Shown piece by piece: positions 5,359 through 43,400 of a stretch of DNA of 64,000 bases. Position 1 is the first letter of the stretch. Every line of letters begins with the position of its first letter. Position numbers and translations under genes: made by a program. The notes beneath the pieces were generated by a model, which made no database searches, was not told where the DNA came from, and worked only from the letters and a program-made list of their open reading frames with translations. Source of the stretch: Cyanophora paradoxa CCMP329 (lineage: Eukaryota; Plantae; Glaucophyta); NCBI GenBank assembly GCA_004431415.1, contig QPMI01000188.1, forward strand, positions 62,001 through 126,000, read 5' to 3'.

Positions 5359-5559
5359 ATAATGCCCGCACCGCACAAATGCATGTGATCATGAGTACAC
5401 GTGAGCGACTCGAGGCTACCGTAGCTTGCGAATCGCACAGGCTTGTGGGGGCCGGCTAGCCGGAGGGGGCGGGGAGGGGCCCGGAGGGGCGGGGATGAGG
5501 CGGAAGCCGTCCCGAGTCCTCTCGCGGGGCCGCCCGCCCCAGCGCCCCCACTGGGCCAG

Positions 5560-12387: not shown

Positions 12388-12759
12388 GCTTATCGTCTGG
12401 TGCCGTGGTAGTGCCCTGTTGCTGAGCTCTTTCGCAGCAATGTTTCATCGCGTGTGTGACGCGCATGCTCTAGATCTTTAATGGCGCACGTGCACGCAGC
12501 AAATTAGAGAGTTCACAGAGTCTCTCAGAGTATGTAGACAAGCGAATTAGAGAGTTGACAGCATGTGCTTGTTGCTTCTCTGGGTTTTGTGCGAATCCGT
12601 CAGCTGCAGTGTGCATGTACATGTGGCGCCGTGGCACCGCCAATGCTTCTGGATCGTTCCGAAGTTCGGGCTAGGCGGAGGGGGCGGGGAGGGGCCCGGC
12701 GCGGGCGTGGGCGAGGAATTCGGGGATGAGGCGGAAGCCGTCCTCCCGCGGGGCCGCCC

Positions 12760-14975: not shown

Positions 14976-15537
14976 GCCAGCGGGGCCCGCCCCCGCCCAA
15001 ATGCAGATGGAGATCATGATACAGGCGCAGCTTAGCGCCAGCGCAGCATGTGCGCAAGCATTTAATGCGCATCGAAGCGCATGCAAAATGCACCGGCCCC
15101 GCAAACGGCAAGAAGTCGACGCGCTAAAAGCTTAAATTTCGATCACTCGGTTCGCGTTCAGCCGCGTTCGCGAAGCCTGCGTCGTTTTCTGGGCCGGGGA
15201 TGCCAACGGTGGCGATTGCGCCCTACCCCGGTGCCACTTTTGCCCCGGCGAATGCGCTCTACCCCCGGTTGCAAAAAAACGCGGTGAAGGGAGACCAGCT
15301 GGCATGAGTGAAGGGCATGGCTGCACCGTGCTTACTGCGCAGTGAAACGCATCACACTCGGCGCCAGACCTTCGCCGTCCGGTACGTGCAGCCCTGACCG
15401 GTGCGCTCCGCCCGCCCGCGGCGCTTGGCATGCGCGTGCGATGGAGCTCATCGTTCGAGCAGGCTAGCCGCGACCTCGCGGATCGCGGCATCGCCGCGCT
15501 CTCAGATCTTCTCCTCTTCTCCACCAGCTAATCAGCC

Positions 15538-22790: not shown

Positions 22791-23120
22791 ACGTCGTATG
22801 CGCGCAAGGCGTAGACGAAGATTTGTGCGAGCCGGAAGTGCCAAAATTAGCCGAGTCGCCAGTTTCGCGGCCAAGCGGGATCGAACCCGCGGCCCCGGGG
22901 GCCCTCACGTTAATTGCGTAAATTGCGCAATCTCACGACAACAATCGTCATGGGGCGCGTGCCGAATTATCCCCCGGCGGCCGGACAGGGTAGCCCCCCG
23001 GCGTCGCCGGGAATATTAGGCCGGCCCCCGCCAGTTAGAGCCAGTTGCTTGCGCGACCGCACGGACGCGACCGCGCCCGTGCGGCCGCACCTCTAAATAA
23101 ATCGCGAGAATAGCCTCGCG
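22791..23120 (+). repeat. Terminal repeat A1 (330 bp)
   Basis: acgtcgtatgcgcgcaaggc...tagcctcgcg, matches 31001-31330. Confidence 0.95.
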
Positions 23121-24049
23121 CAGCAGCAGTAAGTAGCGTTGTATGCCCTCTGAGCAGCTCGCGGGCGTGCTTTCGACCGTCGAAGCGACCAAAATGCAGC
23201 TCAGCCTGCACAACGCCGAACCTCGCGAGTTTTTAACTCGCTACCTCCGTCGCGCCGGTCCTGCCGCGGGAGGCCTTCAGCTCAACTCCATCTCGGCGCC
23301 CGGCGATGAGTTGCACGCGGACCAACTCGTCCTCCCAGGTCAGTGGTGCCCCTCGGGGCGCGCGCAGTGTAGGTGGCCCGCAGGTTCTCTGCAATCACGG
23401 CATCACACTTCGCGGCCACGCCTGGGCAAGGACGAGCGAGACCGCCGATCTCGTCGTCGCGCGCACCGAGATCGGGATCGCGATCGCGACACACACCTGC
23501 GCGCACCGCCAGGCCCCACGTCACGGTCGTGCCCCCCTCTCGATAAGACGCCTTCCCATGGCAACAGCGGCCCGCGCAAGTCTCTTTTTGCGCGATGGTC
23601 ACCGGTTTCGCGCAGATTTCGAGTCTCCGCAAAAAGTGCGCGCACTTCACGATGGCCTGCTTCCGGCCAAGCCAGGGAGCACGCCCTCGCCCTGCGCGCA
23701 CGCTGCCGCACTAACCGGGTTCGAGGCGGGCGGCCTCGCCTCCGAGTCGAGCCTGATCGTCGAAGTCCCGGCCGCGCGACGGCGCAGGGGCGCGGATCAG
23801 GATCCTCGTCCCCCTGGGCGCACGACGGGCGCGGCGTGGGTGAGGCTAAGTCCCACCGCACGCCAGCTGTCCGCGTCGCCTCGAGTTCTCACACTCGCCT
23901 GCCGCGCGCAGATCGCGCCGACACCTCGCGTCAATCAGCGCTGAGGAGCGCGATCGCGAGCCTCCGGCTCGGACACCCCGCTAACCTTGCGGGAGGGGCT
24001 AGAGCGCTCACTACGCGACCGCTCGCCTCGCTCACGCCTTCGCGCGCAG

Positions 24050-27000
24050 CGGAGGCTCGCAAGCTGCTGTCCTCGCGCGCCGACCTTGAGGGCTTCTTCG
24101 AGAAGTACTTCCTCAAGTTTGGCATCCTGTTCACGGCCGCTCGGCTGTTGCCGGACAAGCAGCTGTGCCTCACGGCGTTCGGCCCGGCCGATATGTACGT
24201 GACTGAGCACGACACGGTCTCCTTCGTGCGCCTGACCTGCAAGGCTGCAAACATCGCGCCCACGGCGTCTCTGACCCAATCTGCAGGGCACGGTGTCGCA
24301 GGCCCAGCCGGCCGACGACCACCAGCGCGGCTACTTCGGCGTCCCTCTGGGGCTCCCGCTCCACTACATTCCGGAGGGCGGCGAGTCAGAGGAGGACCGC
24401 GTCGCCCCGCCGGTCCTGGCCCCCTACCGGTACGCCCCATGATCACTTCCTCTCTTTCCCGCCCGCGGACGGCGCTGATCATGTCGGCGGTGCTCGCAGC
24501 GGCCTCGAGGGCCCCTTGGGCAACATGCCGGAGCAGGCGGTGGCCTTCCCCGCCGCCCTGCAGGAGTACAAGCTCCACGTCGGCGAGGTCGCTGGCCTGT
24601 ACGCGGCGCTCCTGGCGCTCCTGGCGAACGGAATCCCCGGCGAGGCCAAGCGCCCTACCATCCCGACGATCATCAAGCGGATCTGCGACGAGCAGCGCCC
24701 GCTCGTCGTCACCGCCCTGCCCTTCGTCGCCGAAACGGTGTGCACCTGCCGGCCGTGCAGCCCGGGCCCGCCCTCCTCCTCGCTCAGCCTCGACCAGGTC
24801 GAGGCGATTTTCGCGGGAGGATCAGGGGCGGCTTTCAAGACCCTCAGCCGCTGCCCGGAGGCCGCTTGGGGCGCCGTCTTCGCGCCAACTGCCCTCAAGC
24901 AGTTCAAGCTTCGCACCCTCCCCAACCTCGCGGTACGCTCGCAGCCCCTCTCCCCTGGCAGCGGCGCCAGTTGCGTTCGTGGCCTCACGACGCCCGCGAT
25001 CGCAGACGCTCGACGACGTCCTCGCCGCTCTCTCCCCGAAGGTCTTCTCTCAGCGGCAGCTGATCGAAGTGGGCGAATACCTCCGCCCGCGCCTCGCTGG
25101 CACGCTGGAGGAGGCGCCACGCACCTCGGCGACCCGCGAAAGCGATCGCGAGCCGGCGACCTCGAGCGCCGCGGCCGAGCGCGACCCCCGGCCGGCCCAG
25201 GGCGCCAAGAAGCCTGTGTCGACCCCGGCCGGGGCGACGTCGAAGCCCGCAGCTCCCCCCTCGAAGGCCTCCAAGGCGCCCAAGAAGACCGGCGCCGCGA
25301 AGGCGCCGGCGGCTCCAGCGGTCCCAAGAAGCGGCCGCCCCCGCCGCCGCCCACTGACTCGGACGACGAGGAGGAGGACGTGGAGGTCGCCCCCAAGCGC
25401 CCCCGGCCGGCGCCAACCCCCTTCTCTGCGTTCGACAAGGGGTACGCCGGCTGGGCCCCCAATGGCAAGCGCCCCATCGCACCGGTACGCCAGCGTTCTG
25501 GGAATCCGAGCGCCACTTCCTCACGCCCGCGAGAGCAGAACGCGGCGGCGCCGGCCCAGGCACCGGCAGCCTCGCGGCCCGGCAGCTTCTTCGCGGCGCC
25601 GGGCGGGGCGCGCAACGGGAACGCTGGCAGCGGTGCGCCTCCCCCGCCTGGGCGCCCACCCCGCCTTCCCCGCGGCCACGAAATTGATGCACCGCCAGTT
25701 CCGTCGGGCGAGACCTGGAATGCGGCGCCCTGGAGCGCGATGGGCCACGCCGGCGACCTTGAGCTCGAGGACGCCGACGACTTCCTGGAGGAGGTCGACC
25801 CCCACGCGCCCCTCTACTACTCGAACCCGCCCAACGGCCAGCCGCCCTACCCGGCGACTTTCGCGGCGGCGCCCCAGCCGCCCTTCTCCTCCTCGGCTCC
25901 GGCAGCGAGCCGTGCACCGCTGCCCCCGGCGGCAGCCAAGGCGATCATCCTCCCGCCCGTGGAGGAGACAGTCCGCTCGCAGCATGGGCTGCCAATCAAC
26001 GACGTCAACAGCGCGCAGATGCGCGAGGCGGTCGTCTGGCTGGCCAAGCGCATCCAGAAGGCAGCTCAGACGCTGTCGGACGGCCGCGTCGGCGAGGAGC
26101 TCGCCCCGAACGCCGTGGCGGCAGCCGCTGCGAAGGGCGGCGCGGCGGTCGGCGCCGAGCTCGCTGACTCGGCCCTCCGCGCCGTCCTGCTCCACCTCGA
26201 GCAGGCCTTCGCGAGCCGCGATTTCGCGGGACTGCTCGCCGCCGTCCAGGTCCAGAGCGCCGTCCTCGACCACGCCCGCGCCGCAGGCGACCCGGAACTG
26301 GTGGCCTTCCTCGCCCAGCACTTCGTGAAGCTGGAGCGCGCCTGCGCCAGCCTCGAGAAGGCCACCCGCAGCGCCGTCGCCATCCACGCCCTCTGCGCTC
26401 CCTCCTCCGCCGGCGGCTTCGACCCTGTGCGCCTCGCGGCCAGCGGCGAGCTGCTCCTTGGCAAGGGCACGGTGCCCAACCCTCCCGCCCCGCCCCGCAA
26501 AAACGGTCCCGACCTCGAACTTACGGACTGCCCGGTTGCAGGCGACGAACCTCCTGAAGGAGGAGGAGGGCTTCGGGCTCGCCGGCCAGCCGACCTGGCA
26601 ACAGCTCGAGGGCGCGGAGGCAGCTCTCAAGTTCGCCCGCAAGAATCTCTCGACGGCGACGGCCTCCTCTCCGGCGGACCTGGTCCGCTCGACCTTTGCT
26701 GGTCCGTGCCCTCAGCCCCAGCCCCGCCGACAGTGCGCGCGCTGGTGCCGGCTAGCGCTGATACCGCCAGCGCGCAGAGGCCAAGTCCGGCGGGCCCATG
26801 GCCACCCTCACCCCGCAGGGGACCGGCTTCATGCCCATGTTCCCGTTCCCCCCCGCGCCTCCCGGCTACTACTACGATCCCGCCCAGCACCGCTCGGGTG
26901 GCGGTGGCGGCGGTGGCGGCCGGCTGCGCAAGGCGCGGGGCGGCGGCGGCGGTGGCGGGGGCGGCGGCGGCGGCGGCAGCCGCAACGGCGGCGGAGGCGG

Positions 27001-27094
27001 AGGCCACACCCAGCACGGCAGCGGAGGCGGCGGCCACGGCGGCGCAGGCGGCGCCGCCGGCAGCGCCGCCGGTCAGCCGGCCCGCAGCGGTTAG
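24050..27094 (+). CDS. Gag-like ORF1 of the YR element, intron-containing (5' start uncertain, possibly 23143 or 23306)
   Basis: GT-AG introns 24226-24286, 24430-24499, 24933-25005, 26472-26541 and 26702-26777 join the coding-like frames; one indel needed near 25325; Gly-rich C-terminus ends with TAG at 27094. Confidence 0.65.
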
Positions 27095-27275
27095 CGGCTC
27101 GAGCGCAGCTGTACGACAGGCCCGCAAACGCGCGGCCGAGGCCCCGCCCCCCAGATCTAGACCTGGCGCCCCCAGGCGTAATTTTGCAGTCGTCGGTAGC
27201 TCGCAGTCAGAGGCAGACAGCCCGGCAGCTAGCCCTGATTTTGATCAGGAGGCAAGATGGGACCTCAATAAATCA

Positions 27276-29395
27276 ATGATTTGGTCTCCCCTCCCGGCCG
27301 ATGCACTGCCCCGGGCCCCTTTGACACCTCCCTCTCACAACGAGTTTGCACTGCTCCGAGAGCTAGTCCGCAAGCACGGTGACCCCGGCCCGTACGACTT
27401 CGCCAGCCACGAGGCAGGCTTCCGTGCGGGCCAGCTCGCAAAGTTTGCACCTGCATGGCGGGCCCTCTTCCGCGCCGCGAACACGGAGCTGCCCTCCTGG
27501 GTTGGCCTAGTGATTCGAGAAGGCCTGCGCCTTCCTCTGCAAAAAGCGCCCGGACAGCCGGTCCCCTCACTTAAGGACCTTCCAGCGACAGCCGCCGAGC
27601 AGCCGCGCCCCTCATGCTTCAAGACGCCTGAGCACACGACCTTCGTCGACCGCGAGGTTGCCGTGATGCTGAGCCTGGGCGTGGCAAGGCTGGCGACGGC
27701 CGAGGACGTGCTCCTCACTCGCCATGTCTGCGCGCTCCATGTCGTAGACAAGAGCGGCCCTGATAAATTCCGCTTGTGCCTAGACGCAACGCCTGTAAAT
27801 GATTTTATTCAGTGCAAATCATTTCAGTATCAGTCGCTCGACCACGTGGCACCTCTGCTCACGCCGGGCTGTTGGATGGTCAAATACGACCTGCGAAAAG
27901 GCTACTATCACATTGCCTTGCACCCGGCTACTCAGCGGCTGCTGACTTTTCGCTGGCGGGGCCGCCTGTACGTCTATCAAGCCCTCTGCTTTGGCGTGAA
28001 CGTCGCTTGTCGCGTCTTCACCAAGCTGATGCGAGCCTTTGCGAAATACTGGGCAGCCCTCGGGGTTCGCCTCTGCACCTACATTGATGACGGGCTCTTC
28101 ATCTGCCCCTCACGCGAGATTGCCGAGCTGGTCTCCCAGCACCTTCGCTGGCTGGCCCCGCAGCTCGGCCTAGTGTTTTCGTCGAAGTCGGACTTCACTC
28201 CGACCCAGGTCACTGAATACCTGGGACTCGAGATCGACACCCGCCCTGGGCGCGGCGTCTTCACCGTAACGCCGAAAAAAGTGGCAAAAATCACGGCTCT
28301 CCTAGACGAGGCGCTGGCGTCCCCGACGGCCTCTGTCCGAGCCCTGCAGCGGCTTGCGGGAAAATTGATTGCGCTCCGCATGGCCTTCCCGGCCGCCCGC
28401 CTCATGACCCGCCCCATTTTTGCGGCGCTGGCGGCGGCTGAGCGTACAGGACGGAACCCGTTCGACCCGTTGGCAGTTCAGATCGACGGAGCGGTCGCGG
28501 ACGCGCTAAACTGGATGCGGCGTGTGCTCCCAACACGCCCCCACCACCCGATTTGGGAGCCCCTCCGTTTCTTTCGGCTGTTCACCGACGCCTCCGGCTA
28601 CGGTTTCGCCGCCTTCTTAGACTGTGGCGAAGGGGCCGCCCCCCTTGACGAACGGCAGGGAGATGCGTGGTCCACCTGGGGCACGTTTCCCCCAGAGCTC
28701 CGTGCCGGCGCGCAGCCCCCCGTCTCGAGCAACGAGCGTGAACTGCGAGCAGTGCTCGCAGCGGCGCGCGACCTCTTCCCCCTGCTCCCGTTCGGCGCAA
28801 AAGTCTTCCTGCGCTCCGACAACTCGACTACGGTCGCCGCAGTCGGCAAGGGCAGCGCCTCCCCCCGCCTGTTTGACCTGTGCGTCGAGCTCTGGCGACG
28901 CTGCGCAGAGCTCGGCATTATTCTTTGCGCACGCCACATTCCCGGCGTACGCAACCGCTGGGCTGACACGGCCTCGCGTTCCCTGCGCCCGCAGCTCCAC
29001 CGAGGACTGCTCGCTGCGGCGCACGCGGCTCTCGGCGCGGGCTGGCCCATGAGCACGTCGCAGACGACTCCGACGTCTGGCTGGCGGCGGCGCGGCCCCA
29101 GCGCCCCGCAATTCTCACAGCCGACTCGCGGCTCCGAGCTCGCCTTCTGGCGAGCCTCCGCGACCACCCGCCCGCCTGCCCCGTGGCCCTCCTACTACCA
29201 TGGCAGCCGAGCACGACTTGGGCGGTCGCGCTGTCCGACCTCTGGTTCCAGCCGACGGTGCAGGCCGCTTCGCTGCGACCGCGGCCGGCGCATGCCTTTT
29301 ACGCGAAACCGACGCAGGGCAAATCGCTCCTTGGCCTCGGCCGCTCCCCCTGGACCTTCGTACTGACTTGGTGGGGGGGCGTAAACGCGCTCTAA
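27276..29395 (+). CDS. Pol: reverse transcriptase + RNase H + degenerate C-terminal domain
   Basis: KFRLCLDATPVN, KYDLRKGYYH, LCFG, YIDD (28080), YLGLEID; RNase H FTDASGYG, SNERELRA, SDN, HIPGVRNRWADTASR; probable frameshift near 29046 continues to ALLLPWQPSTTW...NAL*; start arbitrary. Confidence 0.93.
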
Positions 29396-29424
29396 AAACC
29401 CATTAGAGCGGGTCGGGCCCCCTG

Positions 29425-30483
29425 ATGCACTGGGGGAGCCTCGATCTGACGCCCCACCGTGGCGCAGACACGGCCCGGCGGCCTGGCGATTCTTGGGGCG
29501 CGGTGCGCTCCGAACTCGCGCGCTGGCAGACGGCGGCGTGGGCGGAGCGCACCCGCGCAGCGGCCTCGCGCGTCTGGCGTCGCTACTTGGCCTTCCTCGC
29601 GGCTGCCCCCGAGCCGCTGCACCCCGGTGACGAAGACTCCATTCTTCTCTTCCTGGCGTCAGCGGCCCGTGCCCGCCAAGCGGCCACCGGACAACCGCTG
29701 GCTGCTACGACCATCAAAAACATGGCCGCCCACATCTGGCGTACGCTTAAAGCTGCGCGGCTCGTCGACCCCTCCCAGCAGCACTCCTGGGAGTACACGA
29801 TGACGCTCCGCGGCATGACTCGGGCACTGGGACGCCCGCCGCGCCAGATGCGGCCCCTGGTCCTGCCACAACTGCAGGCATGGACCGCAACGGCAACTTT
29901 TCGCAGCCTCCCTCCGTTCGAGCGCACCGCCTGCCTCGCACTCCTAGCGCTCGGGATCGCGGGCCTTCTCCGGATCTCCGAGGTCGCGGCGCTCCGGACC
30001 GGCGACGTCACGCCGATCATCTCTTCAGGGGGCCGGACCATGCTGCGGGTGACTATCGCCAGCTCGAAGACCGACCAAGCCGGGCACGGCGAGCACATTC
30101 TCGTCTCCCCAGCTCCCGCGGCCGGCCCGGCCTGCCCCGTCCGGGCCACTGCGGCCTACGCCTGTGCAGCCGCCCGCCGCTACGGCCCTCTCCCGCCGAC
30201 CGCCCCCTTCTTCCTCCGGGGCCCACCGAGCCGCCCCCGCGGCTACGACGACGCCCTCGGGCGCGCCATCATTAAACTCTGCGTCGGTGACATCGGCCTC
30301 GACCCAGCAAATTACTCCGGCCACAGCCTCCGACGCGGCGGGGCCCGCTCGGCAGTCCGCGGCGGCGCCTCCGCCACCTGGCTCCGCCGCCACGGCCGCT
30401 GGGCTCTCACATCGATGGTCCCCCAGCGCTATGTCGACGATTACACCGTCGCCCTGGAGGCCGAAGGCGTCGCCTTCGCTTGA
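29425..30483 (+). CDS. Tyrosine recombinase (retrotransposon YR)
   Basis: Catalytic motifs LLRISEV, SKTDQ, HSLRRGGA, GRW and QRY. Confidence 0.95.
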   Translation: MHWGSLDLTPHRGADTARRPGDSWGAVRSELARWQTAAWAERTRAAASRVWRRYLAFLAAAPEPLHPGDEDSILLFLASAARARQAATGQPLAATTIKNMAAHIWRTLKAARLVDPSQQHSWEYTMTLRGMTRALGRPPRQMRPLVLPQLQAWTATATFRSLPPFERTACLALLALGIAGLLRISEVAALRTGDVTPIISSGGRTMLRVTIASSKTDQAGHGEHILVSPAPAAGPACPVRATAAYACAAARRYGPLPPTAPFFLRGPPSRPRGYDDALGRAIIKLCVGDIGLDPANYSGHSLRRGGARSAVRGGASATWLRRHGRWALTSMVPQRYVDDYTVALEAEGVAFA

Positions 30484-30595
30484 ACCGGACTTCAGTTCCA
30501 GCTTTCCCAGCCGTGCAACCCTGTTCGCACGTGTGCACGAGAATAAAAATTTTAAATTCCACCTAGCTGCTGCTGCTTGAGACCTGGCCCTTGCT

Positions 30596-31000
30596 TGGTT
30601 TGGGCCCGGCGGGCTCCGCCCCCCGGCCCACCAATGAATTCCTGCCTAAGTCTCAGACCGCTGCACTTACCAGCGGTCGCTGTACCCCACCTCTCCCAAG
30701 AGGCCCGCTCGGCACCCTCGAGGTGCCGGGCTCGGGGTACAGCAATTCTAGACTCGCAGTAGCTCGCTAGAAAAAACGCACACGATGTGGACCCCTGGGG
30801 AAGCATCAGCCAGTATCCTCGGCTAGAGAGCGCAAGGAAACCGTGACCACACGGGGATTGCCTCTCCGGTTCGCGCCGCGAACCGTGCTCCCCTCTTCAC
30901 GATCAGCTCGAGATAGCTAGATGCTCGAGTTGAAGTGAATCAATATATTACATACTCTGGGCGCTCGGCGGAGAAAAAAGCACGAGAGGCCCCGCATAAA
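30596..31000 (+). repeat. Terminal repeat B1 (405 bp)
   Basis: Matches 31599-31794 + 35167-35375, with one C/T difference seen. Confidence 0.93.
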
Positions 31001-31330
31001 ACGTCGTATGCGCGCAAGGCGTAGACGAAGATTTGTGCGAGCCGGAAGTGCCAAAATTAGCCGAGTCGCCAGTTTCGCGGCCAAGCGGGATCGAACCCGC
31101 GGCCCCGGGGGCCCTCACGTTAATTGCGTAAATTGCGCAATCTCACGACAACAATCGTCATGGGGCGCGTGCCGAATTATCCCCCGGCGGCCGGACAGGG
31201 TAGCCCCCCGGCGTCGCCGGGAATATTAGGCCGGCCCCCGCCAGTTAGAGCCAGTTGCTTGCGCGACCGCACGGACGCGACCGCGCCCGTGCGGCCGCAC
31301 CTCTAAATAAATCGCGAGAATAGCCTCGCG
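31001..31330 (+). repeat. Repeat A2; the B1|A2 junction reproduces the element end|start (circle) junction
   Basis: ...cccgcataaa|acgtcgtatg... Confidence 0.95.
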
Positions 31331-31598
31331 ACCCACCCTCCCGCACCTCTCCGACCTCAGGACCTGGGCGAAGGCCTGGCTCGGAGCCGAATTAAATTGC
31401 GGTGACCCGAATTCGAATTCGAATTTCGGATTTCTGAGTTCGGCCGAAGAAACTTTAACCGCGGTTTTTCAAAAAATCGGCCTGTCAAAAACAAGCCAAC
31501 TTCGGTATATCGAATCCGAAGGCTGGAAGGGAATTCCTGGCAAGAGCTGAGCTGTACGCCAAGTTCCAGTTCTTGGCTACGGCTCAGCAACTTGGGCA

Positions 31599-31794
31599 TG
31601 GTTTGGGCCCGGCGGGCTCCGCTCCCCGGCCCACCAATGAATTCCTGCCTAAGTCTCAGACCGCTGCACTTACCAGCGGTCGCTGTACCCCACCTCTCCC
31701 AAGAGGCCCGCTCGGCACCCTCGAGGTGCCGGGCTCGGGGTACAGCAATTCTAGACTCGCAGTAGCTCGCTAGAAAAAACGCACACGATGTGGA
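31599..31794 (+). repeat. Repeat B2, left part (ends with TSD copy 1, 31774-31794)
   Basis: Copy of 30596-30791. Confidence 0.93.
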
Positions 31795-34700
31795 ATATAT
31801 TAAATTTGCATTAGCACAACCGTACAACACTGAAGTCGTAACGTCGACCATACCCTCACTGAAAACTATATCCAGGAAGAGAATATGAGGACTCTCGTGT
31901 GCTGTGCCTAAACATCTACCTATATATATAACTAGCTATCCATCTAACTCTACCCCTGGGCTAGTCCTATGCTAATAGGTGGGGATGGAGCGAGGGTGGT
32001 AAAGCTGGTGGGGTGGTACTGCCTGAGTGGAGAGGTGAGGAGCTTGGTGCCTCCGGCCCCGCTAGGGCCGGGGGTTCAGAGAGGATTAGGCCTCCACTTT
32101 GGCTGGGCACTCCCGCTCCGTTGCTCCCCGACTCCAGCTGTCCGCCCCCTCCCAAGTCTACCCCCCTCTCCCCCCCCGGCATGGGCCCGCCCTCCCCTGC
32201 CTGTACGCACAACTTGCCAGTGTCCTTCACACTAGCACGTACAATCCTCGAGGCCTCTCTAGTCTTTAACTGCGGCCTGGCTGCTGGGCTGCAAGCATGG
32301 CGCCAAAATACATCGCCTGCGCCTGGTTCATCTGCATCTGCTGTGCCACCTGCTGCGGCGTCTGCTGCATCATAAATCCCGGGAACCCCCCCGGGAGCTG
32401 GGGGGAGAGGATGGGGATCGGGGGCTGAGGCGCCGCCACCTCCACCGGAGTGTGTCCTCCGCGCCCGCCGTGGGGTCCGCCGCGTCCGCGCGTCCCGCGG
32501 CCCCGCGAGTTGCGGCCACGGGTATCGTTGCTGCTCAGCGCCGGCGCCGCTGACGTCACTGCTGCCGAGTCTATGCCCAGCTGCAGCGGCGGCCAGGATG
32601 CTGCGGGGACGCCGGCCACGACGGCAAAGAGGTCGGTCGGCGTTGCGCTGCTGCCGCCCCAGGCTGGCGCTGGCGGGCCGTGGGAGGTACAAATGGCTGC
32701 AGCACCCGAGGGCGCTTGGCCTCCTTGGGGAAGAAAGTCTCGCGGGGTCCGCCTCTTCCTGGTCGCGCTTGCTCCCGCGCCCGCGCCCAGCGTTCGCTGC
32801 TGCGCCGCCGCGTCCACGGCCGCGGCTGCTGGCTGCTGAGCCCGGCTGCTGGCCAGCCAACGACGCTGCTGACGCCTCAGCGTCCGCCTCGCCGCTCGTC
32901 CGCGGCTTCCAGTCCGTGCCCGGGCACTTCGAGCTCTTGTGTTCGAAGTAGGCTTGGAGGCGGTGACGGCGGCAGCCAGCGGGGCTGAAGTTCTGGAGCG
33001 CCTTCGGGGTGAGGCTCGCCGGCGGCCGGACACGCCAGAGCGAGGCCGTGTGGTCCGCCACCTGCATTGAGAGGTGAAGCGTCTCGCCGCACGAGTAGCG
33101 CACGCCAGGCGCGGCGGGCTTCATCGCCGCCTCCCAGGCAGCCACCTTCTCCTTCTTGATAAGGAGGTGCAGCACGTCGCCGTCGGGTGGTGACTGGCCG
33201 TGACTGTAGCTGCATTGGTGGTAGACCAGCGTCACTTCTGCCGGGTTGCGCGCCACTTCCTTGAGGATGGTGGGCAGCTGCCAAGCCTTCAGCCTTCTGC
33301 GTCCGCGGGGACGGGAGGGGAAAAAGGACTCTCGGCTCACCGGGAGTTGCGCTGTCGCCGCGTGCAGAGCCAGAACAAAGGTGCCGCAGGTGTGGAGCTC
33401 GGGGCCTCGGTTGCGAGGTTCACCGTGATGGGACACGACTCGAACCGCAGCAGGTTCGCCTTGCTGAGTTCGATCAGTCTGCGAGCGCGGGTTGCTGTCA
33501 GCCTCAGGTCAGCCCCGGTCGCCGTGCGCGGCAACGTACTTGTTGGCCAGGTGAACGTTGCCGGTGGTGAGGGCGATGCGCGGAGGCTCGCGCATGATCA
33601 TGTTCTGTTGTACCGCCGCTGGCGTGCCGGCCCATCCGAGGACTCGAAAGCCGAGGCATTCTGCCTCCAGCTGCGTACCAGCGGTTGGTTAGCGTTCGCC
33701 GCGTGGCCGGTTAGATCATCGCACCGTGCCGTCTTGCAGCGGCGTGAGTTTCTCCCGCGTCGCGGTCTTAAGCGACTTCGTCGCGTCGTGCTCCACCTGG
33801 CGCGCCAGTGTGCGGAAGAGATGAAGCACATCGCGGCGCGTGTTCGCGGAGAAGTTGCCGTCCGGCTGGAGGCCGCCCTTGGTAGAGAACACCGGGGCGC
33901 CGTCGATGAGGATCATTGGCGCGTGCTCCTTGTCATCGAGCAGCATCCATGGTTTCGGGGCTCTCTGCGCATGCACAGTTATGGGGAAGTCGTTCCGGCT
34001 CGCTCGGCGGCTTACCACTACTGGCGAATCGATCTGGTAGATCGTCACTTCGTCTCGGCGATTCGTCTTGTTCGGCAATTTCACCGCGAGGCATGTAGCG
34101 ACGCGCAGTTTCGCAGCCGTGTCTTTGGTCCACTGCGAGGGGTGAGTGAGGAGACTTGGGGACGGGCGTATCGTCAGATCGGGCGTACCTTGCGAGCTTT
34201 CGCATATGTGACATCTGTCATCACGTCCGGCGTTGCCAGTACTGCGACGCACCCCTTTGAGGGGAAGTTGGTGCGCACTCCGCCGTGGGCGATGTTCCGT
34301 TCTGAGATCACCTGTCGCACATTCTCAGCGTGGGCGGGAGCTCGCTCGGCCGAGTCATGACGGACCGTTTGAACCATATGTTTGCGTTCATTCAGTGGGA
34401 CTAGCCCGTCGCCGTTGAGGCAGAGTTGGGTCCCCGCGTACTTGGTCGGGACAAGGTCGAGCGGTTCGAAGACGACCGCAACCATGAACTTCGGGACGCG
34501 GAAGGTCTTGTTTATCGGTTGCGACTTGTCCCGTCGCTCTCCGGCCGTCGGCGCTCGCACAACTGGGCCGCTCGGCCCTGCCGCGTCATCGTCGTCGGCG
34601 TCGCCGGCATAGTCTTCATCTTCGCCGGCGTTCACCGCAGCGCCCTGCTCTCCGGCTTCTGCACCAGCGCCTTGCTCGCCGAGATCTGCGCCGTTGCCAG

Positions 34701-35145
34701 CATCGTCGATCTCGCCGAGGCCGTCCATGAGCTCATCGCCATCGGCGTCTCCGCCTTCCTGGCCAGCGCCTTCCTCAGCAGCGCCAGGCTGGGCTGGCGT
34801 TGCGAACGGGTTGAACTCCTGTTCCGCCATCGTGTGGCGCACTTCTCTGCGCATCGTCGTGTCGGTTAGACAACTGGTGCGAAATCGTGCCGGGCCTGGA
34901 GCTTGGCCGGTTAACTGGCCGTCCAGAAGACGTGGCATCTCATTTCAGGACAGGGGGTCCTGTGATTGCGGCAAAGGCCTTTGCGGCGACAAGCAGTGGC
35001 CTTTCGGCGGATTTGAGCCATCGGGCGGGCGCGAGGCACGCTAGAGGTCTCACCAGCGCAGACACTGGCTCCCACAGTGTGTAGGCGTCGTGTCGGCGCG
35101 GGTTCCGGCGCCTCGTGCTCCTTTTTCGGGGTACCGGAATCGCAA
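31795..35145. mobile_element. 3.35-kb nested insertion with 21-bp TSD, non-autonomous (no RT or transposase recognised)
   Basis: aaaaaacgcacacgatgtgga is single in B1 (30771-30791) but duplicated at 31774-31794 and 35146-35166, flanking the insert. Confidence 0.9.
32266..34830 (-). CDS. Spliced ~780-aa ORF1/Gag-like protein of the nested element (acidic N-terminus, Zn-knuckle-like CRRH-x7-H-x4-C, RG/Q-rich C-terminus)
   Basis: ATG 34830 (MAEQEFNPF); GT-AG introns 34188-34133, 33724-33671, 33539-33479 and 33340-33297 join four stop-terminated segments into one frame; indels needed around 32680-32750. Confidence 0.7.
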
Positions 35146-35375
35146 AAAAAACGCACACGATGTGGACCCCTGGGGAAGCATCAGCCAGTATCCTCGGCTA
35201 GAGAGCGCAAGGAAACCGTGACCACACGGGGATTGCCTCTCCGGTTCGCGCCGCGAACCGTGCTCCCCTCTTCACGATCAGCTCGAGATAGCTAGATGCT
35301 CGAGTTGAAGTGAATCAATATATTACATACTCTGGGCGCTCGGCGGAGAAAAAAGCACGAGAGGCCCCGCATAAA
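35146..35375 (+). repeat. TSD copy 2 + right part of repeat B2 (element 3' end)
   Basis: Copy of 30771-31000, ending gccccgcataaa. Confidence 0.93.
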
Positions 35376-36297
35376 CCCGATTGATCGGGTTTTACGGTTA
35401 ATTCTGTTCAATCCTCTCCAGCGGCCGGCAGCGCTCTGCGGGCGGCTCCGGCCAGTGGGCAATGATGAGCACATTAATCTGCATCCCAGGGACCTCTACG
35501 ACGCCTTCCCCAAGCGGCGCTCGAAGGGCGAAGCTTCGGTTCGTGTGCAAGCGCGCCTTGCAGCCTCGACTCTAAGACGCGAGCCGGCGGCGCAGATGGG
35601 GTTCTGGAGTTCTCAGGAGCCGTTCGCATCACGCCAACGCCCGTGCCGCGCGAAGCGGGAACGCCGCCGGCCTCGAGCGATCGAGGACGGGGTCGCCGCA
35701 GGCGGAGCGCCAGCAGCTCTCCTGAAGCCGGCTTATCGTCGACCGCAATCGACAAGGACGCGCTGGACGCAGTGACGCGGAGAAAAGCTGGCACGTCGAT
35801 TGAGCAGGGTTTACGGTGAACTCTGCTCAATCCTGTGGAGCGGCTGGCCGCGGCTTGCGGCGGCCTCCGGCGAGTGGGCGACGTTCAGCGCATCGATCTG
35901 CATCCCAGGGACATCTACGACGGCTTCCCCAAGCTGTGGTCCGTGGGTACGGTGCGCGCCTCCCGGGAAGCTCGAGGCGGGCGCCAGCAGCTCGCCGGGA
36001 GGTCGCTTATCGTTGACTGCAGCACTAGACGCATTCAAGCGAGGATGAGCTAGGTGCGGGCCTGCCCCCGCTCTCTGTGCCGGTTTCGGCCAACCTGTGA
36101 TCTTGAGCTCCTCGCCGCAGTGTCTGTCGGCGGCCGCCGCCGCACTGGAGGTGTAGCAGGAGATCTTCTGGTCCACTGGTCCGGCCTCCTGCGGGCCCAA
36201 GATCGGGCGGTGCGCGCGCCGCTGGCGCCGCTCCTAGGCCTGCGGCCGAGAAAGGGCCTGTGGCCGAGGAAGTTGCCGTGCTTACTCGCGCGCAGCA
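35376..36297. repeat. Continuation of the third 2.4-kb repeat unit
   Basis: Matches ~20378-21300. Confidence 0.92.
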
Positions 36298-37100
36298 CCC
36301 CCCTCTGGCTGGCCCAGCACTGTGTAGCGCGGCTGGCGCGAGCCGCGCACCGCTCTCGAGCTTCTGGCACGACCGCTGATCTCGTGGGTTGCTGCTGGCT
36401 AGCCCGCGTCAAGGCCGTGTCTGCCGCCTGCGCGATGGCGTCGACCATTGCTCTGCGTATCGACAAATGCAATGCGAGGGAGGCCGAACGGACCTGTCAA
36501 CTCCCCTCCAACGTAGCGCCCGCGCTTCCGGTGGATGCGGCTCTCAGATCGCACGGCCACATGCATCCGGTGCGTAGCTGCAGCTCGTAGGTCGGTGCCA
36601 GCATGTGGTTGGATTGCAGCTGGTGGGTGGTCCGACGGTCTGGTAATCCGCCACGGTCGAAGCCAATGCGAACCAACTGCAGCGCCATTGCATGTCCCCC
36701 ACTGGTGCCGCTGCTGATGGTTGGAGCTGGCTATGTGGAGCCTGCAGCTGACGTGGGTCATGCGGGGCCTAAGGTTGACTCAGTAAGCAACTGCCACCGA
36801 TAGGCAGCACTACTACTACCCCCGTCCAGCATCGCGGGATCTTCACGTTTCAAGCCCGAAGCTTTCGCACTGCGGCACTTGAACAGAAACTAGTAGATCG
36901 AGTCTGCAGAGTTTGAGTTTGGTGCGCCCGCTCGCGCCTGCTGGTGCGGCGCTATCGAGTGGCCTTCGTCCCACTGGCCGAGCGGTTGTCTGGTGCAGGC
37001 CGCTCGCTTCAACCGAGGCACGCGCTCGCGAGCGCTTCGGACTCGCCGGACCGTCGCGGGCAGCCGCGGATCGCGCGGCGCGGCTGGCGCGAGCCGCGCG

Positions 37101-38270
37101 ATGGCGGCCGGCGGGGAGCGCATCCCGCTGATGCGCGTCCTGCTCCTGACGCTGGAGTGCGCCGATCCCCTGTTCAGGCACGCGCCCCGCCGCCCTCCCG
37201 CCCGACCGCCGCGCCGCTGACGTCCGGCGAACGCGCAGCGGTGCGAGCGTGCAGCCGCTGCGCCGGGAGGTGGCCTAGATCCTCCACGTTGCAAGCATAG
37301 ATCTGCGCGCGCTCGCCGCCGCGCCGCGCCGCTGAGGGCGGGGCGGGGGCGGGCAGGGAACGGGCAGTACTCGCGGATCATCTGCTCGACGCTCAACGCG
37401 GCCGGCAGCGCCGTGCTGCTCGTCTGCGGCCGCCCAAAGGCGTCGCCCGAGCGCTTCCCCTTCCCCCACGACCGCGCCCTCTTCCAGGGCATCACGGCGC
37501 GCCCTGCCCGCCCGCCCGCCCGCCCGCCCGGCGCCCCCGCCGCGCCCGCGCTCACGCCTCACCCGCTGAACGGCAGGTGCCGGTGGCGCGCTGGTTCAAG
37601 CACGACCGCGGGTGCGCGCACGAGGAGTACTGCGCCGGCGTCGAGGCGGCCGGCGAGGCCATCGCCGCCTTCGGCCCCGACGCCGTCGTCGGTCCGCCCG
37701 CTCCCCAAGTCCTTCTGATCTGATCTGATCTGAGCTTTCGGGTCAGCGGTGGACTGGGTGGGGAGCCTGGCCCACCGCCGCATCTGGCACCTCATCCCCA
37801 GCGTGCCCGTCGTCTGGCTCAACTTCCGTGCGCCCCTGTACCCCCCAGTGGCGAGCCCCTGCCGCCCGCTGACCCTGTACCCCCCCAAGGCGTCTTCCAC
37901 ACGAGCCACAACATACCGCCCGAGGACATCCCCTTCTACCAGTGCGGCCGATCCCCCCTCCTTGTCTTTGGCTGTACCCCCCGCCCCCGCGTCCGACGGA
38001 CCCGGGGACAGGGAAGCGGAGGCGGTGGCGTGCCGAGCGGCATCGCACGCGGTGGCCCTCTGCAGGCGCGCGCGGCCCGCCCCCGCCTTCCCCGCCCCGC
38101 CCCGCCCGGCCGCCGCCCCGCCGCCCCCTCACAGGCCGCAGGATGGACGCGACGGTCCTTGAGAGCAACGCCGCCGGGCCGGCACCGTTCGCGTGCGCCC
38201 CTTCACGACTCTGTAGCTCGAGTCTCCCTAATGCGTTTACTGGACCAAAGAAAGCCAGTGGTGCTGCTCA
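37101..38270 (+). pseudogene. 5'-only truncated duplicate of the GT4 glycosyltransferase gene
   Basis: 36895-38270 is a diverged copy of 40250-41650; homology stops at a GC minisatellite. Confidence 0.75.
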
Positions 38271-38289
38271 CGTGGGCGCGCGGGAGCGA

Positions 38290-38560
38290 GCGGCGAGCGG
38301 CGGCGCGCCTCGCCGGGCGGGGCGGAGCCTCGGAGGCGCGGCGGGCCGGGCCCGGGGCGGAGGCGCGGCTGGCGGGCGGAGGCGCGACGGGCGGCGGCGC
38401 GGCTCGCCGTGCGCGGCGGAGGCGCGGCGGGCGGCGGCGCGGCTCGCCGTGCAGGGCGGAGGCGCAGCGGGCGGCGGCGCGGCTCGCCGGGCGGGGCGGC
38501 GAAGCCTTGAAGCGGGCGGCGGCGCGGCTCGCGGGGCGGGGAGGAGGCACGGCCGGAGGC
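38290..38560. repeat. GC-rich minisatellite (~39-bp unit ggcggcgcggctcgccgtgc...)
   Basis: Imperfect tandem units visible. Confidence 0.7.
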
Positions 38561-39039
38561 CTAGGCGCGGGGCGGTAACCCTCCACGCCGGCACCGTAAA
38601 GGCCAGCCACTTGTATCCCTGGATTCATCTAGATCTGGCGATCTACGATCGAACAGTGTGCGGCACGCCGTGAAAGCCCTTGAAAGCGCATGTACCCCCC
38701 TCGAGGAATAGTCAGAGCCGCCTCGCTGCCCTCGAGGTCGCTCCGGATCCGGCCGTGCATGACGTCTTTTCTTCGGTTCAGAATTGTCTAGAACTGTGTT
38801 TCCCTATCACGCCGCAGCCAACATGATCATCAGCCCCAGCACGAGATAGAGAGCGACCTGCCCCTGCCATGAGAGGGTGGGCGACGGGCTCGCGCACGGC
38901 GGCTCCGCCGGCGAGGGGCTTGGCACGGGGCTCCGGCCCTGCAGCGACAATCAGAGGCTCGCGTCCAGAACATCGGAGAACACAGAGGATCTAAATAGAC
39001 CAGAAGGGCCTCGGCGGCATGCGCGTCCTCCCCCGCCTT

Positions 39040-39460
39040 GTCCTCAAGCAGCTCCCCCTTCGGCTTCTGCGCAGGGGCTCGTCATCGAAACGCCGGAGCT
39101 CGAGGCCTGACGCAAGCTTAAACAGGGGCGGCCGGCCTCGATCTGCACCTTCAACGCTTCGAGCAACTGCTCCGCTCGGCTCAATTCCAGCTCGAGGGCC
39201 TGCGATCCGAGTTCAGAGCCTGCGGCCGCGTGCGGCGCCGCGCAGAAGCGGCCCACAGGCCGCAGCCAGGCCCAGCGGGGCGCACACCTGCTTCTCCAAC
39301 GCCGCCTGCTGCTTCGTCTGGGTCACCTGGAGCTCGAGGGCCTGCGTTCAAGGTCGGGGGAGTCAGCGCGGGACACCGGGATGCGAAGCCCATACTTGTA
39401 GCTGTGGAATCATAGAGGCGACCGACCTGGATTCGGGTATGATGCACGCAAGCCTGTTCA
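39040..39460 (-). CDS. Possible small spliced coiled-coil gene fragment
   Basis: Exon-like ALELQVTQTKQQAALEKQ and ALELELSRAEQLLEALKVQIE bounded by splice-like sites. Confidence 0.3.
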
Positions 39461-40439
39461 ACCCCGCGCATGTCAGAGATCGCCGCAGAACAGGCTGGAC
39501 CAAACCAAAGCGCACAAGTACGACGATAATGACGGAAAGAAAGAAGATCGTTCTGTCGACGGGTAGCCCGCACCAGCCCCGCATTTGATCCGGGGCCTGT
39601 GAGCGCGGAGCGACGTGAGCGCGGCATATGCGTCCGGCCAAAGTGGCGAGGCCCGACCGCCTGGCCCCTAGCATCCGCTTGAGGAATGGTCTGGACGGAG
39701 ACGCGCTGCGCACGTGCAAGCTGCGCGTTAGCGTGTGGTCAGGAAGACACACGACGTCGACGTCCGCACCGGCATTGGAGACGAATTCGACGCAGAGAGG
39801 CCGGAGGAGTCGTAATTTCGCTGGGATTCTGCGCACAACAGGTCTCGTAACCACTCGGAACAACGTTACGCGTCCATGGCCAAAGCGACGGCGACAGGCC
39901 GCAAGAACGACGCGCTATGCGCACGCAAGCGAACGAGAACGCGATCTTCTTAACGCGAGCTTCTTAACGCTATCGCGCACTACGCGCGGTCGGCAGAAAA
40001 CTCGGGCAGGGTTTAGGGAGCGCGAGAAGAGGGAGCAGAGCAGCGGGCGAGCTGACCGCCAGAGGGGGCGCTGCGCAGAGACTCAGAAGCTGCTCCCAGC
40101 CTCCCGCAAGCGCTGGGCGGTTCCCGTTGCGTTGCCTGGGTGCGCGGGTCAGCAAGTTGTACCCGGCGCGGGACGAAGCCGCCTCGAAGCATCGAAGACG
40201 AAGGAACTTGCGGGATCAACGACATTCGGCCTGTCGTATTGGACCCGAGAGATCGAGTCTGCAGAGTTTGAGATCGGTGCGCCCGCTCGCGCCTTCGCCG
40301 CTGCGCCTTCGCCTGGCCGAGCGGTGGTCCGGCGCAGGCCGCTCGCTTCTACCGCGGCACGCGCTAGCGAGCGCTTCGGACTCGCCGGACCGTCGCGGGC
40401 GGCCGCGGATCGCGCGGCGCGGCTGGCTCGAACCGCGCG

Positions 40440-43400
40440 ATGGCGGCCGGCGGGGAGCGCATCCCGCTGATGCGCGTCCTGCTCCTGACGCTGGAGTGCG
40501 CCGATCCCCTGTTCAGGCACGCGCCCCGCCGCCCTCCCGCTCAACCGCCGCGCCGCTGACGCCCGCCTGACGCGCAGCGGTGCGAGCGCCCAGCCGCTGC
40601 GCCCGGATGTGGCGTAGACCTTCCACGTTGCAAGCATAGATCTGCGCGCGCTCGCCGCCGCGCCGCGCCGCGCCGCTGAGGGCGGGGCGGGGGCGGGCAG
40701 GGAACGGGCAGTACTCGCGGATCATCTGCTCGACGCTCAACGCGGCCGGCAGCGCCGTGCTGCTCGTCTGCGGCCGCCCGAAGGCCTCGCCGGAGCGCTT
40801 CCCCTTCCCCCACGACCGCACCCTCTTCCAGGGCGTCACGGCGCGCCCCGGCCCGCCCGCCCGCCCGCCCCGGCCCGCCCGCCCGGCGGCCCGCCCGCCC
40901 GTCCGCCGCCCCCGCAGAACCGCCGCGCGCCGCCGCGCAGGTTCCGGTGCCGCGCTGGTTCAAGCACGACCGTGGGTGCGCGCACGAAGAGTACTGCGCC
41001 GGCGTCGAGGCGGCCGGCGAGGCCATCACTGCCTTCGGCCCGGATGTCGTCGTCGGTCCGCCCGCTCCCGAAGTCCTTTTGATCTGATCTGATCTGAGCT
41101 TTCGGGGCAGCGGTGGACTGGGTGGGGAGCCTGGCCCACCGCCGCATCTGGCACCTCATCCCCAGCGTGCCCGTCGTCTGGCTCAACTTCCGTGCGCCCC
41201 TGTACCCCCCAGTGGCGAGCCCCTGCCGCCCGCTGACCCTGTACCCCCCCAAGGCGTCTTCCACACGAGCCACAACATACCGCCCGAGGACATCCCCTTC
41301 TACCAGTGCGGCCGATCCCCCCTCCTTGTCTTTGGCTGTACCCCCGCATCCGCGTCCGACGGACCGGGGGCAGGGAAGCGGAGGCGGTGGCGTGCCGAGC
41401 GGCGTCCCACGCGGTGGCCCTCTGCAGGCGCGCGGCGCCCGCCCCCGCCTTCACCGCCCCGCCCCGTCCCGCCCCGCCCCGCCCCGTCCCGCCGCCCCGC
41501 CCCTCCGCCGCCCCCTCACAGGCCGCAGGATGGATGCGACGGCCCTCGCGAGCAACGCCGGTACCGTGCGCCCCTCTACGGCTCTGCAGCTCTGCAGCTC
41601 GGTCCCCACTGACGTCTTTGCCGGACCAGAGCAACCTGGTGGTGCTGCTGCCCCCGATCCCGGCGTGGTGTGAGGCAAAAGCGCGCGCCTGGCGGCCCCC
41701 GCCGCCGCCCCCGGCCCCGCCGGTGCCGGCCCCGCCGCCGCCGCCTGCGGCTCCGCGGCCGGGCGAGGATGGGGGGGCGGAGGAGGACCGTCTGGAGGGG
41801 GACGCGCCCCCCGGGGCGGGCGAGGGGGTACCGCAGCTACCGCCGGACCGGCCCTACCTCCTCTGCTGCGTCCGGCGCAGCCCTGAGAAGAACGTTCGTT
41901 CGCCCCATCCATTACAGAACTACATAGAGGAAGGAGGCGCCGGCGGCCTCCAGAAATCCTGCACGCCCTCCTTCTTCGCTTCGATCCTTACTGGGCCGGG
42001 CCCAGGTCGACTTCTTCGTTCGCCTGTGCCAGCGCGCCTCGGCGCTCCTCGACTCGCTCGGCGTCGTACCCCTCCTCTGCGGCGCCACCGCGGCGCGCCC
42101 CTCTCCCCCTCTCGCCCGCCCTTGCCCCGCGCAGAGGCAGAGGCTGAGGCTGCGCTGCGCTGCGCGCAGGACGAGTCGTACGACGCGGGGCTGCGGGGGG
42201 GTCTCCTCGCCGCCTGCCGCCGCGCCGAGGCGCGCCGCCGCCCGCCCCGCCCCGCCCCGCCTCATGCCCGCCTGATCGTTGAGCCCTTGATCGCGCCTCA
42301 GATCCGGGGCTCCCTCAGCCACGACGAGCTCATGGACGTCTACAGCAAGTCCGTATCCCCCGTCCTCCTCCGTCTCCCGTCTCCAGAGCCTAAGAGCGCC
42401 CGGCCCGGCGGGCAGGACGCTGCTGAACGTGCACACGGCTCTCTACGAGCCCTACGGCCTCACCATCGTCGAGGCGGCCGCCTTCGGCGCCCCCTCCCTC
42501 ATCCACCGCGGCGGCCAGGCGAGGCCCGGGGCCTGGGCCGCCCAGCTCCGCTCGGCTCAGCTGAGTTCTGAGCGGGCCGGGCGGGGCGGGGCGGGGCGCA
42601 GGTGGGGGCGACGGACCTGCTGCGGCCGGGCCCCGCCTCGGGGTGGGGCGAGGGCGCCGCCGATGCCGTGCGCTCTCCTCCCCTCCCTCTCCCCCCTCCC
42701 TCCCCCGTCCGCCCGCCCGCCTCAAACCCCTTCTCCCCCGCAGGAGGAGGAGGAGGAAGGGTTCGAGACGGACATGGCGGACCTGGAGACCTGCGCGCAG
42801 GTGCGCCGCTGCCGCGCTGCCGCTGCTGCTGGGCGCCCTCGGGCGAGCGAGAGCAAGCTTAAGCAAGCACGAAAGCTGCTGTGTGACCTAGCGAGCTAGC
42901 GCCCCCACTGAACCCGCCCGCCCGCCAGCCCGCCAGTCCGCCAGCCCGCCTGCCCGCCCCCCTGCCCTATCTAGCTAGCTAGCTAGCTGGCGCCCCCGCC
43001 GAACCCGCTGCGCCTGCCTGCCAGCGAGCCGGCCCGCCCGCGCGCCTCCCTGCCCACCTGGGGGCGTGCGTGCGCGCGGGACCTTGTGGCCGCCGAGCTG
43101 GGTCGCTACTAGTTAAGAGCTAGAAGAACCTAGAAGGTAGTTTGTTAGTGGGGGCTAGAAGGTAGTTAGTTAGTTAGTGGGGGCTAGAAGGTAGTTAGTT
43201 AGTTAGTGGGGGCTAGTAACGAGCCCTCGCAACTCTTAGCTCTAGCTCTTGACAAGTAACTCGCGCAGGACCTGGTCGCCCTCCTCGCCGACCCCCCGCG
43301 CATCGCCGCCGCCGGTCCGTACGCGTCCGGATCCGCCCGACGCCCCCGCCCGAGCGGCAGCGGCTCCGACGCATGCATGCATACATACATGCACCGCCTT

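Follow-up and report, generated by a model that had tools for sequence, protein, structure and literature searches.

The genome of the glaucophyte Cyanophora paradoxa CCMP329 contains a young mobile element whose only cargo is an expressed, intron-rich orphan gene. The copy described here lies in a 64,000-nucleotide stretch (GenBank assembly GCA_004431415.1, contig QPMI01000188.1, positions 62,001–126,000 of the forward strand; hereafter the window, whose own numbering is used throughout), where it occupies positions 31795–35145 (3351 bp) between the two copies of an exact 21-bp target-site duplication (TSD). The insertion is recent and genuine, it is that of a multi-copy element, and it is nested in a repeat whose uninterrupted counterpart serves as its own empty-site control. 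The element belongs to a small Cyanophora-specific family of 3.35 kb in which each copy carries one expressed gene of eight exons. As for the way in which it spreads, we favor with moderate confidence a non-autonomous retroposon, copied by a long interspersed nuclear element (LINE) from unspliced or antisense RNA. Mobile elements of glaucophytes are almost undescribed and no family like this one has been described for the group; if the retroposon reading is right, what is new is a retroposon carrying an intron-rich expressed gene. The Cyanophora genome consists to 11.5% of unknown repeats and to 2.5% of LINEs, and its genes have a mean of 9.2 introns (PMC6704402).

A nested insertion with an internal empty site

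The 21-mer AAAAAACGCACACGATGTGGA occurs exactly at three positions in the window, 30771, 31774, and 35146, where none would be expected by chance. The first lies in repeat B1 of a host element that encodes reverse transcriptase (RT; RVT_1 match, E 1.7e-10), and the other two in repeat B2 of the same element (Table 1). Alignment of B1 (30593–31001) with B2-left (31596–31794) plus B2-right (35167–35376) is free of gaps and has one internal mismatch, and the 21-mer is the sole stretch found on both sides of the interruption of B2, being single in B1. Because this alignment places the 21-mer alone on both flanks, the insert is bounded to positions 31795–35145, with an exact 21-bp TSD. Both the positions of the 21-mer and the B1/B2 alignment uphold the first-pass annotation of this DNA, which had described a 3351-bp insert splitting B2 and duplicating a 21-mer that is single in B1. 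The TSD has been observed for this one copy of the element, and the 64-kb window contains no second copy of the insert or of its end modules.

Contigs of four public sequencing runs of the same organism, two DNA-like (X1, X2) and two RNA-like (X15, X17), were mapped on positions 31400–35600. The uninterrupted form of B is present in DNA contigs of two runs (joint 31773→35146, the 21 letters fitting either side), as it should be because B1 and other copies of the host element would both give it. At 31642 the empty-site contig has C where B1 and B2 of the window both have T, and therefore it derives mainly from other host-element copies. One contig of the RNA-like run X15 (depth 8) matches B from exactly 35167 and has 252 nt of unrelated sequence on its left, so in another B copy a different junction falls at the very phosphodiester bond that delimits the TSD on one side. 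An origin of B1 by deletion was rejected, as most genomic B copies are empty and the insert occurs elsewhere.

The host element is itself inserted, without a TSD, in a 2413-bp tandem unit that resumes exactly at 35376. Positions 20000–20299 correspond to 22413–22712, and 20378–20677 to 35376–35675 at 100% identity, which provides a precise empty site for the RT element; within that element, 22791–23090 corresponds to 31001–31300. Two young insertions are thus nested one in the other, each with an internal empty-site control.

Copies, ends, and the eight-exon gene

A search with the last large exon of the gene retrieved two Cyanophora paradoxa proteins from EukProt, P0002 (tig00000806_g4359), which is the gene model of the window itself, and P0001, which is 93% identical. 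Cluster look-ups and a profile search extended this set to subfamily A, which comprises at least six gene models on six contigs (P0001–P0005 and P0008; 92–99% identity); a search for further copies, as proposed in the first-pass annotation, therefore finds them on different contigs. These contigs are tig00000806, tig00021692, tig00021017, tig00020531, tig00020848, and tig00021094. A second subfamily, B, is likewise multi-copy; its models P0006, P0009, P0010, and P0011 are located on three contigs, tig00000448 (two models), tig00000190, and tig00020961. Subfamily B shares about 42% identity and the same architecture with subfamily A, and the two align collinearly from end to end, the low-complexity C-terminal half included. 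In the DNA runs, depth stays even across the insert, at about 610–620 in X1 and 545–555 in X2. Because single-variant contigs have depths of about 90–130 against about 610 for the insert, about 5–6 copies are estimated, in agreement with the count of gene models. Since the copies are near-identical, the mobiliser is probably still active, and the earlier view of a recent insertion by a probably active mobiliser is supported by this near-identical, multi-copy family. In the annotation, one gene model of subfamily A, P0008 (tig00021094_g18101), is fused to a caleosin domain (PF05042), which probably marks an insertion beside or inside a caleosin gene.

No relatives outside Cyanophora were found among 1.84 billion representative proteins (phmmer, single-exon query) or in a 5.8-billion word index, and scans of viral and metagenome contigs, for which the protein profile and a single DNA pattern taken from the left module served as queries, gave no match. 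P0007, among the matches of the sequence searches, is a spurious repeat protein and not a relative.

The element begins with ATATAT and ends with TCGCAA. Its ends bear no terminal inverted repeats (TIRs), as had been claimed from inspection: the best inverted alignment of one end with the other does not outscore shuffled sequences. Neither do the 40 nt at the two ends share any k-mer of 5 nt or longer as a terminal direct repeat, and a poly(A) or simple-repeat tail is absent at both ends. An Rfam scan (31600–35400) and a tRNA scan of the insert gave no match.

The left end, downstream of the gene, is an AT-rich module in which depth is 8558 at 31837 and 2005 at 31867, while the interior of the insert has 609. 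Bin arithmetic suggests that the high depth, about 14 times that of the remaining insert, is confined to roughly 31817–31866 and stops short of the outermost ~20 bases. RNA contigs of other transcribed repeat families match about 31804–31918 and then diverge (loose ends at 31804, 31915, and 31918), and the segment of about 31817–31866 may be a shared retroposon tail, a fragment of a miniature inverted-repeat transposable element or a regulatory module. The right end contains an interrupted stem-loop, the base of which (35141) is the exact point at which two other genomic copies stop matching; DNA loose ends at this position in X1 and X2 belong to two contigs with mutually unrelated flanks. The window copy has four extra bases, GCAA, between 35141 and the TSD, and one RNA contig departs already at 35128 and continues with about 650 nt of unlike sequence, so that two copies end at 35141 and the window copy at 35145, and a transcribed copy diverges at 35128, a variation of 4–17 nt. 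Site-specific recombination with a 21-bp core was rejected, as the flanks of the other copies are unrelated; the A/C-richness of their flank consensus is most likely an artefact of consensus calling from two contigs and was not used. The sole plus-strand T run of 4 or more in the 3351-bp insert, at 35122–35126, varies in length (one DNA contig has an additional T); a plus-strand transcript by RNA polymerase III terminating at this T5 was considered and rejected, as the element runs 19 nt further.

Seven splice joints, exclusive to the RNA-like runs and all GT..AG on the minus strand, define eight exons (Table 1). They bear out the earlier call of one minus-strand gene and correct the number of its introns, which had been given as four: six lie in the coding region (51–63 nt) and one in the 5′ untranslated region (UTR; 207 nt). 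DNA contigs retain all seven at full depth, not one of these contigs lacking an intron, so that the RNA check proposed for the introns finds splicing in RNA-like contigs only. At the intron between exons 3 and 2, the paralog P0006 favors removal of 54 nt. Relative to P0005, the window copy shows three frame breaks, because one G is missing from the assembly at each of three G-runs (after 32674, 32743, and 33400); these G's are present in all four runs at full depth. With the three restored, the exon lengths sum to 2226 nt, that is, 742 codons, the length of P0005. The gene copy is thus most likely intact and its frame breaks are most likely long-read homopolymer errors of the reference assembly, which have harmed the annotated gene model P0002 (705 aa instead of 742). 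Low-depth contigs of X15 (about 5–7 against 200–440 for mRNA, or about 1.5–2%) cover intron position 33329 and positions 31925–32136, downstream of the stop codon, and may represent rare unspliced read-through RNA or DNA carry-over.

The encoded protein has an acidic N-terminus of about 95 aa, a conserved core of about 420 aa, a knuckle, a KRPR segment, RGG boxes, and a Q/M-rich tail, so that the acidic, Zn-knuckle-like, and RG/Q-rich regions recognized earlier are all present. The core, at approximately residues 100–530, is common to both subfamilies and has many invariant polar and acidic residues, the acidic ones including Asp184, Asp245, Asp246, Asp256, Asp270, and Glu293. The knuckle is an invariant, CHHC-like C-x2-H-x7-H-x4-C motif, and the conserved DPR..FF..KRPR segment resembles a nuclear localisation signal. 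The 742-aa protein probably acts for the element as a nucleic-acid-binding factor in the nucleus, in a role like that of open reading frame 1 (ORF1) proteins of LINEs or of Gag.

Searches for known domains returned nothing. Pfam, run on each exon separately and on the full-length database protein P0005, finds no family at E values up to 10, and thus no RT, endonuclease, DDE, GIY-YIG, Rep or helicase domain and no LINE ORF1- or Gag-like domain (coiled-coil/RRM/CTD, esterase, PHD, CCHC). Sequence and profile searches of the PDB gave no significant match; MntA (E = 0.7) was discarded, the matching acidic residues not being kept in subfamily B. A feature search of the ESM Atlas gave no usable neighbour, and AlphaFold models of the core and of a 134-aa subdomain are unusable (mean predicted local distance difference test score, pLDDT, 30.5 and 36.6, respectively), including a β-α-β-β-α-β pattern with pLDDT below 50. 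No HUH/HUQ or (G)YxxK motif is common to the two subfamilies. The absence of RT, endonuclease, and DDE motifs claimed in the first-pass annotation is thereby confirmed; its term "enzyme-less" holds in that no enzyme is recognisable, but the conserved 420-aa core could be a cryptic transposase.

Mode of propagation

Under the retroposon reading, a full-length RNA of the element would be copied into a staggered chromosomal break by target-primed reverse transcription, with RT and endonuclease supplied in trans by a LINE of the same genome. Such integration would leave the 21-bp duplication, a ragged end, and no inverted repeats. Every DNA copy has kept all seven introns, which excludes mature mRNA as the template. 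What is copied would instead be a minor, unspliced read-through sense transcript starting in the first bases of the element, or else an RNA transcribed from the other strand. In this model, the RNA intermediate and the LINE helper are inferred, as is the role of the protein.

Several features argue for this mechanism. A TSD of 21 bp is of ordinary length for LINE-type integration, LINE-dependent retroposons having TSDs of variable and often considerable length (7–20 bp or more), whereas the cut-and-paste superfamilies of eukaryotes known to us produce TSDs of 2–11 bp, and here the exact duplication is combined with the lack of TIRs and terminal direct repeats. The family is dispersed, two other copies having unrelated right flanks, and the right end is ragged. 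The first exon reaches within 17–23 nt of the element end, so there is no room inside the element for an upstream promoter, as with LINE-like internal promoters. The lack of a poly(A) tail has also been counted in favor, and the low-depth coverage of intron and post-stop sequence in X15 is compatible with rare unspliced read-through RNA. The more specific proposal of the first-pass annotation, an ORF1-only partner of a bipartite retroelement, has just three grounds: the TSD is long, and both TIRs and a poly(A) tail are lacking.

Other points weigh against it. The clues to orientation disagree. A sense-strand template is favored by the start of transcription close to the terminus and by the left module that other repeats share, an antisense one by the A6 at which the TSD starts, the AA at which the element ends, and the stem-loop at that end. 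The copies keep the introns of the sense transcript, unlike LINE-dependent retroposons, which fits only an unspliced or antisense template, and we know of no sense-strand retroposon that has kept as many as seven introns. The high-depth left segment appears to be subterminal and is thus weak evidence for a shared 3′ tail, and contaminating DNA may account for the low-depth coverage of an intron in the RNA runs. The TSD is that of the window copy alone. Finally, a conserved 420-aa core as sole cargo of two subfamilies also fits an autonomous element with a cryptic transposase.

Among known retroposons, HAL1 ("half-L1"; mentioned in PMC5753468) and other ORF1-only or non-coding partners of LINEs (SINEs, SVA) resemble the element in forming young multi-copy families with a long TSD and no TIRs. 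Partners of the HAL1 type also lack an RT or endonuclease of their own and have a single protein gene that could serve the RNA. The element differs in that its protein has no detectable similarity to any LINE ORF1, in its seven spliceosomal introns, and in lacking a poly(A) or simple-repeat tail. Retention of introns has other precedents: in Penelope-like elements and retroviruses, DNA copies keep spliceosomal introns since unspliced RNA is the template, and the TSDs of Penelope-like elements are variable and often long. However, these elements encode their own RT and carry one or few introns rather than seven. Penelope-like elements moreover have pseudo-long terminal repeats and hammerhead ribozymes, and that class was rejected here for the lack of an RT or GIY-YIG domain and of any Rfam match in 31600–35400. 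A processed retrocopy was also rejected, given the kept introns, the missing poly(A) tail, the ~5–6 copies, and the second subfamily. Should the element indeed be retroposed, a LINE-type machine can spread a seven-intron gene with its introns intact, which would bear on the duplication of intron-containing genes and on the escape of retroelements from splicing.

It is possible, though we hold it tentatively, that the element is instead a hitherto undescribed kind of DNA transposon, autonomous and moving by copy-and-paste, with the 742-aa protein as a transposase making a 21-nt staggered cut or its equivalent. Introns would then be kept because DNA, not RNA, is moved, and the presence of all seven in every DNA copy alongside normal splicing of the mRNA would need no special assumption. 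The element carries no cargo besides this one gene, which is conserved over its full length between two multi-copy subfamilies; the invariant acidic residues of the core and the heterogeneous right end with its stem-loop point in the same direction. So does a close parallel in anatomy with Replitron-1 of Chlamydomonas reinhardtii, a copy-and-paste transposon of the HUH-Rep type that is 3.6 kb long, has one intron-containing gene, low copy number, no TIRs, TSDs of variable length, a "fuzzy" end, and a terminal hairpin, and the protein of which had no Pfam/CDD match at first, profile searches later revealing Rep (PMC10288648). The element is likewise about 3.5 kb in size with one intron-bearing gene without a Pfam match, no TIRs, a low copy number, and an algal host, and it too has a fuzzy end with a terminal hairpin, but here on the 5′ side of the gene and in Replitron-1 on the 3′ side. 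It differs in having no HUH/HUQ or GYxxK motif and no 6-bp direct terminal repeats, and it is not inserted downstream of RG. A Replitron (HUH Y1 Rep) was rejected accordingly, Rep motifs II (HUH/HUQ) and III (GYxxK), looked for as sequence motifs, being absent in both subfamilies and terminal direct repeats being absent as well; to our knowledge, no Replitron protein has been reported in glaucophytes.

The same absences of a shared HUH/HUQ or (G)YxxK motif, of TIRs, and of terminal direct repeats of 5 nt or more count against a DNA transposon in general, as does the transcript that begins within 17–23 nt of the terminus, too close to it for an upstream promoter to fit inside the element. The TSDs made by known eukaryotic transposases are far shorter than 21 bp, and we know of no precedent among these enzymes for a 21-nt stagger. 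In addition, with no relative in Pfam, the PDB or other species and with unusable structure models, there is no positive sign of a catalytic fold. A DNA transposon with TIRs and a DDE transposase was rejected, as neither TIRs nor a DDE transposase domain is found. Helitrons share with the element the lack of TIRs, a hairpin near one terminus, and the frequent carriage of intron-containing host genes, but they make no TSD, insert between A and T, and have 5′-TC and CTRR-3′ ends; the 21-bp TSD, the terminal sequences, and the lack of a Rep or helicase domain led to their rejection.

A particular version of the DNA-borne alternative, which we regard as doubtful, makes the orphan protein a transposase or integrase with a fold that has so far not been tied to transposition, in an autonomous, TIR-less copy-and-paste element with TSDs of about 21 bp. 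A DNA-borne element would be a new transposon superfamily, found the way Replitrons were; with a new transposase fold, the family would add to the eukaryotic transposons a superfamily that has to date been seen in one glaucophyte only.

It is unlikely that the gene belongs to an ordinary lineage-specific host family and that the window copy is a passenger, a piece of the genome copied on one or a few occasions, either by repair capture at a staggered break or by read-through (transduction) of a retroposon, namely a neighbour whose fragment would form the AT-rich left module. The gene is host-like, with GT-AG introns of 51–63 nt typical of Cyanophora, normal splicing, and good expression; the left 130 nt have 40% GC against 62–66% and recur in other transcribed repeats of higher abundance; and the RNA contig that runs 650 nt upstream of 35128 into unrelated sequence looks as if the expressed copy had a longer 5′ region. 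However, two other copies stop matching no more than 4 nt from the right end with mutually unrelated flanks, each of the two subfamilies has multiple copies scattered across many contigs, and the near-identity of the copies points to repeated recent copying of one defined unit, as in a family of transposable elements. That the insertion and duplication are an artefact of a long-read mis-join is hardly credible: errors of the long-read type do occur (the three G's missing in G-runs), and none of the short-read contigs listed (a minority) bridges the filled junctions, but the duplication is exact, comparison with B1 fixes the limits of the insert to the base, other loci have the element with a right boundary that differs by no more than 4 nt, and a mis-join would not yield a 21-bp direct duplication of unique target sequence.

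The locus offers a clean, dated, and nested insertion of a family that is apparently active now.

Feature coordinates and neighbouring repeats

Table 1. Features of the host element, the insertion, and its gene, in window coordinates
Feature	Position	Strand	Remarks
Host element	22791–35375	plus	Split direct repeats A1 ... B1-A2-B2; encodes RT
Host repeat A1	from 22791		
Host repeat B1	30593–31001		
21-mer, single	30771–30791		In uninterrupted B1; empty-site reference
Host repeat A2	31001–31595		
Host repeat B2	to 35375		Interrupted by the element
TSD, left copy	31774–31794		End of B2-left; exact 21-mer, by alignment with B1
Inserted element	31795–35145	minus (gene sense)	3351 bp; without TIR or terminal direct repeat
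AT-rich end module	31795–31925	minus	Downstream of gene; 40% GC, against 62–66% elsewhere
Exon 8 (last)	32266–33277	minus	Stop codon 32266–32268; codes for end of core, C-x2-H-x7-H-x4-C motif, KRPR motif, RGG boxes, Q/M-rich tail
Intron	33278–33340	minus	Coding region
Exon 7	33341–33478	minus	One G missing after 33400, giving an apparent frameshift
Intron	33479–33539	minus	Coding region
Exon 6	33540–33670	minus	RNA joints 33478→33540 and 33670→33725
Intron	33671–33724	minus	Coding region
Exon 5	33725–33964	minus	RNA joints; matches P0005
Intron	33965–34015	minus	Coding region
Exon 4	34016–34132	minus	RNA joints
Intron	34133–34188	minus	Coding region
Exon 3	34189–34311	minus	Upstream boundary uncertain by 2–3 nt; RNA joint 34309→34364 (cut +2)
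Intron	~34312–34365	minus	Coding region
Exon 2	34366–34846	minus	Start codon 34830–34828; acidic N-terminus
5′ UTR intron	34847–35053	minus	GT-AG, 207 nt; RNA joint 34846→35054 in X15 and X17, none in the DNA runs
Exon 1, non-coding	35054–35145	minus	RNA contigs extend to at least 35122–35128
Stem-loop	35101–35141		14 bp, interrupted; fold z = −2.3
TSD, right copy	35146–35166		Start of B2-right; begins with A6, the last two bases of the element also being A

Elsewhere in the window, two regions appear to consist of tandem repeats. In the first (about 3100–15100), the apparent unit is about 3.59 kb, with recurring open reading frames and 11-mers at 6976, 10569, and 14159. In the second (36900–41600), it is about 3.35 kb, positions 36974–38173 being 84–96% identical to 40313–41560. 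Both regions are very GC-rich, with up to 83% GC.

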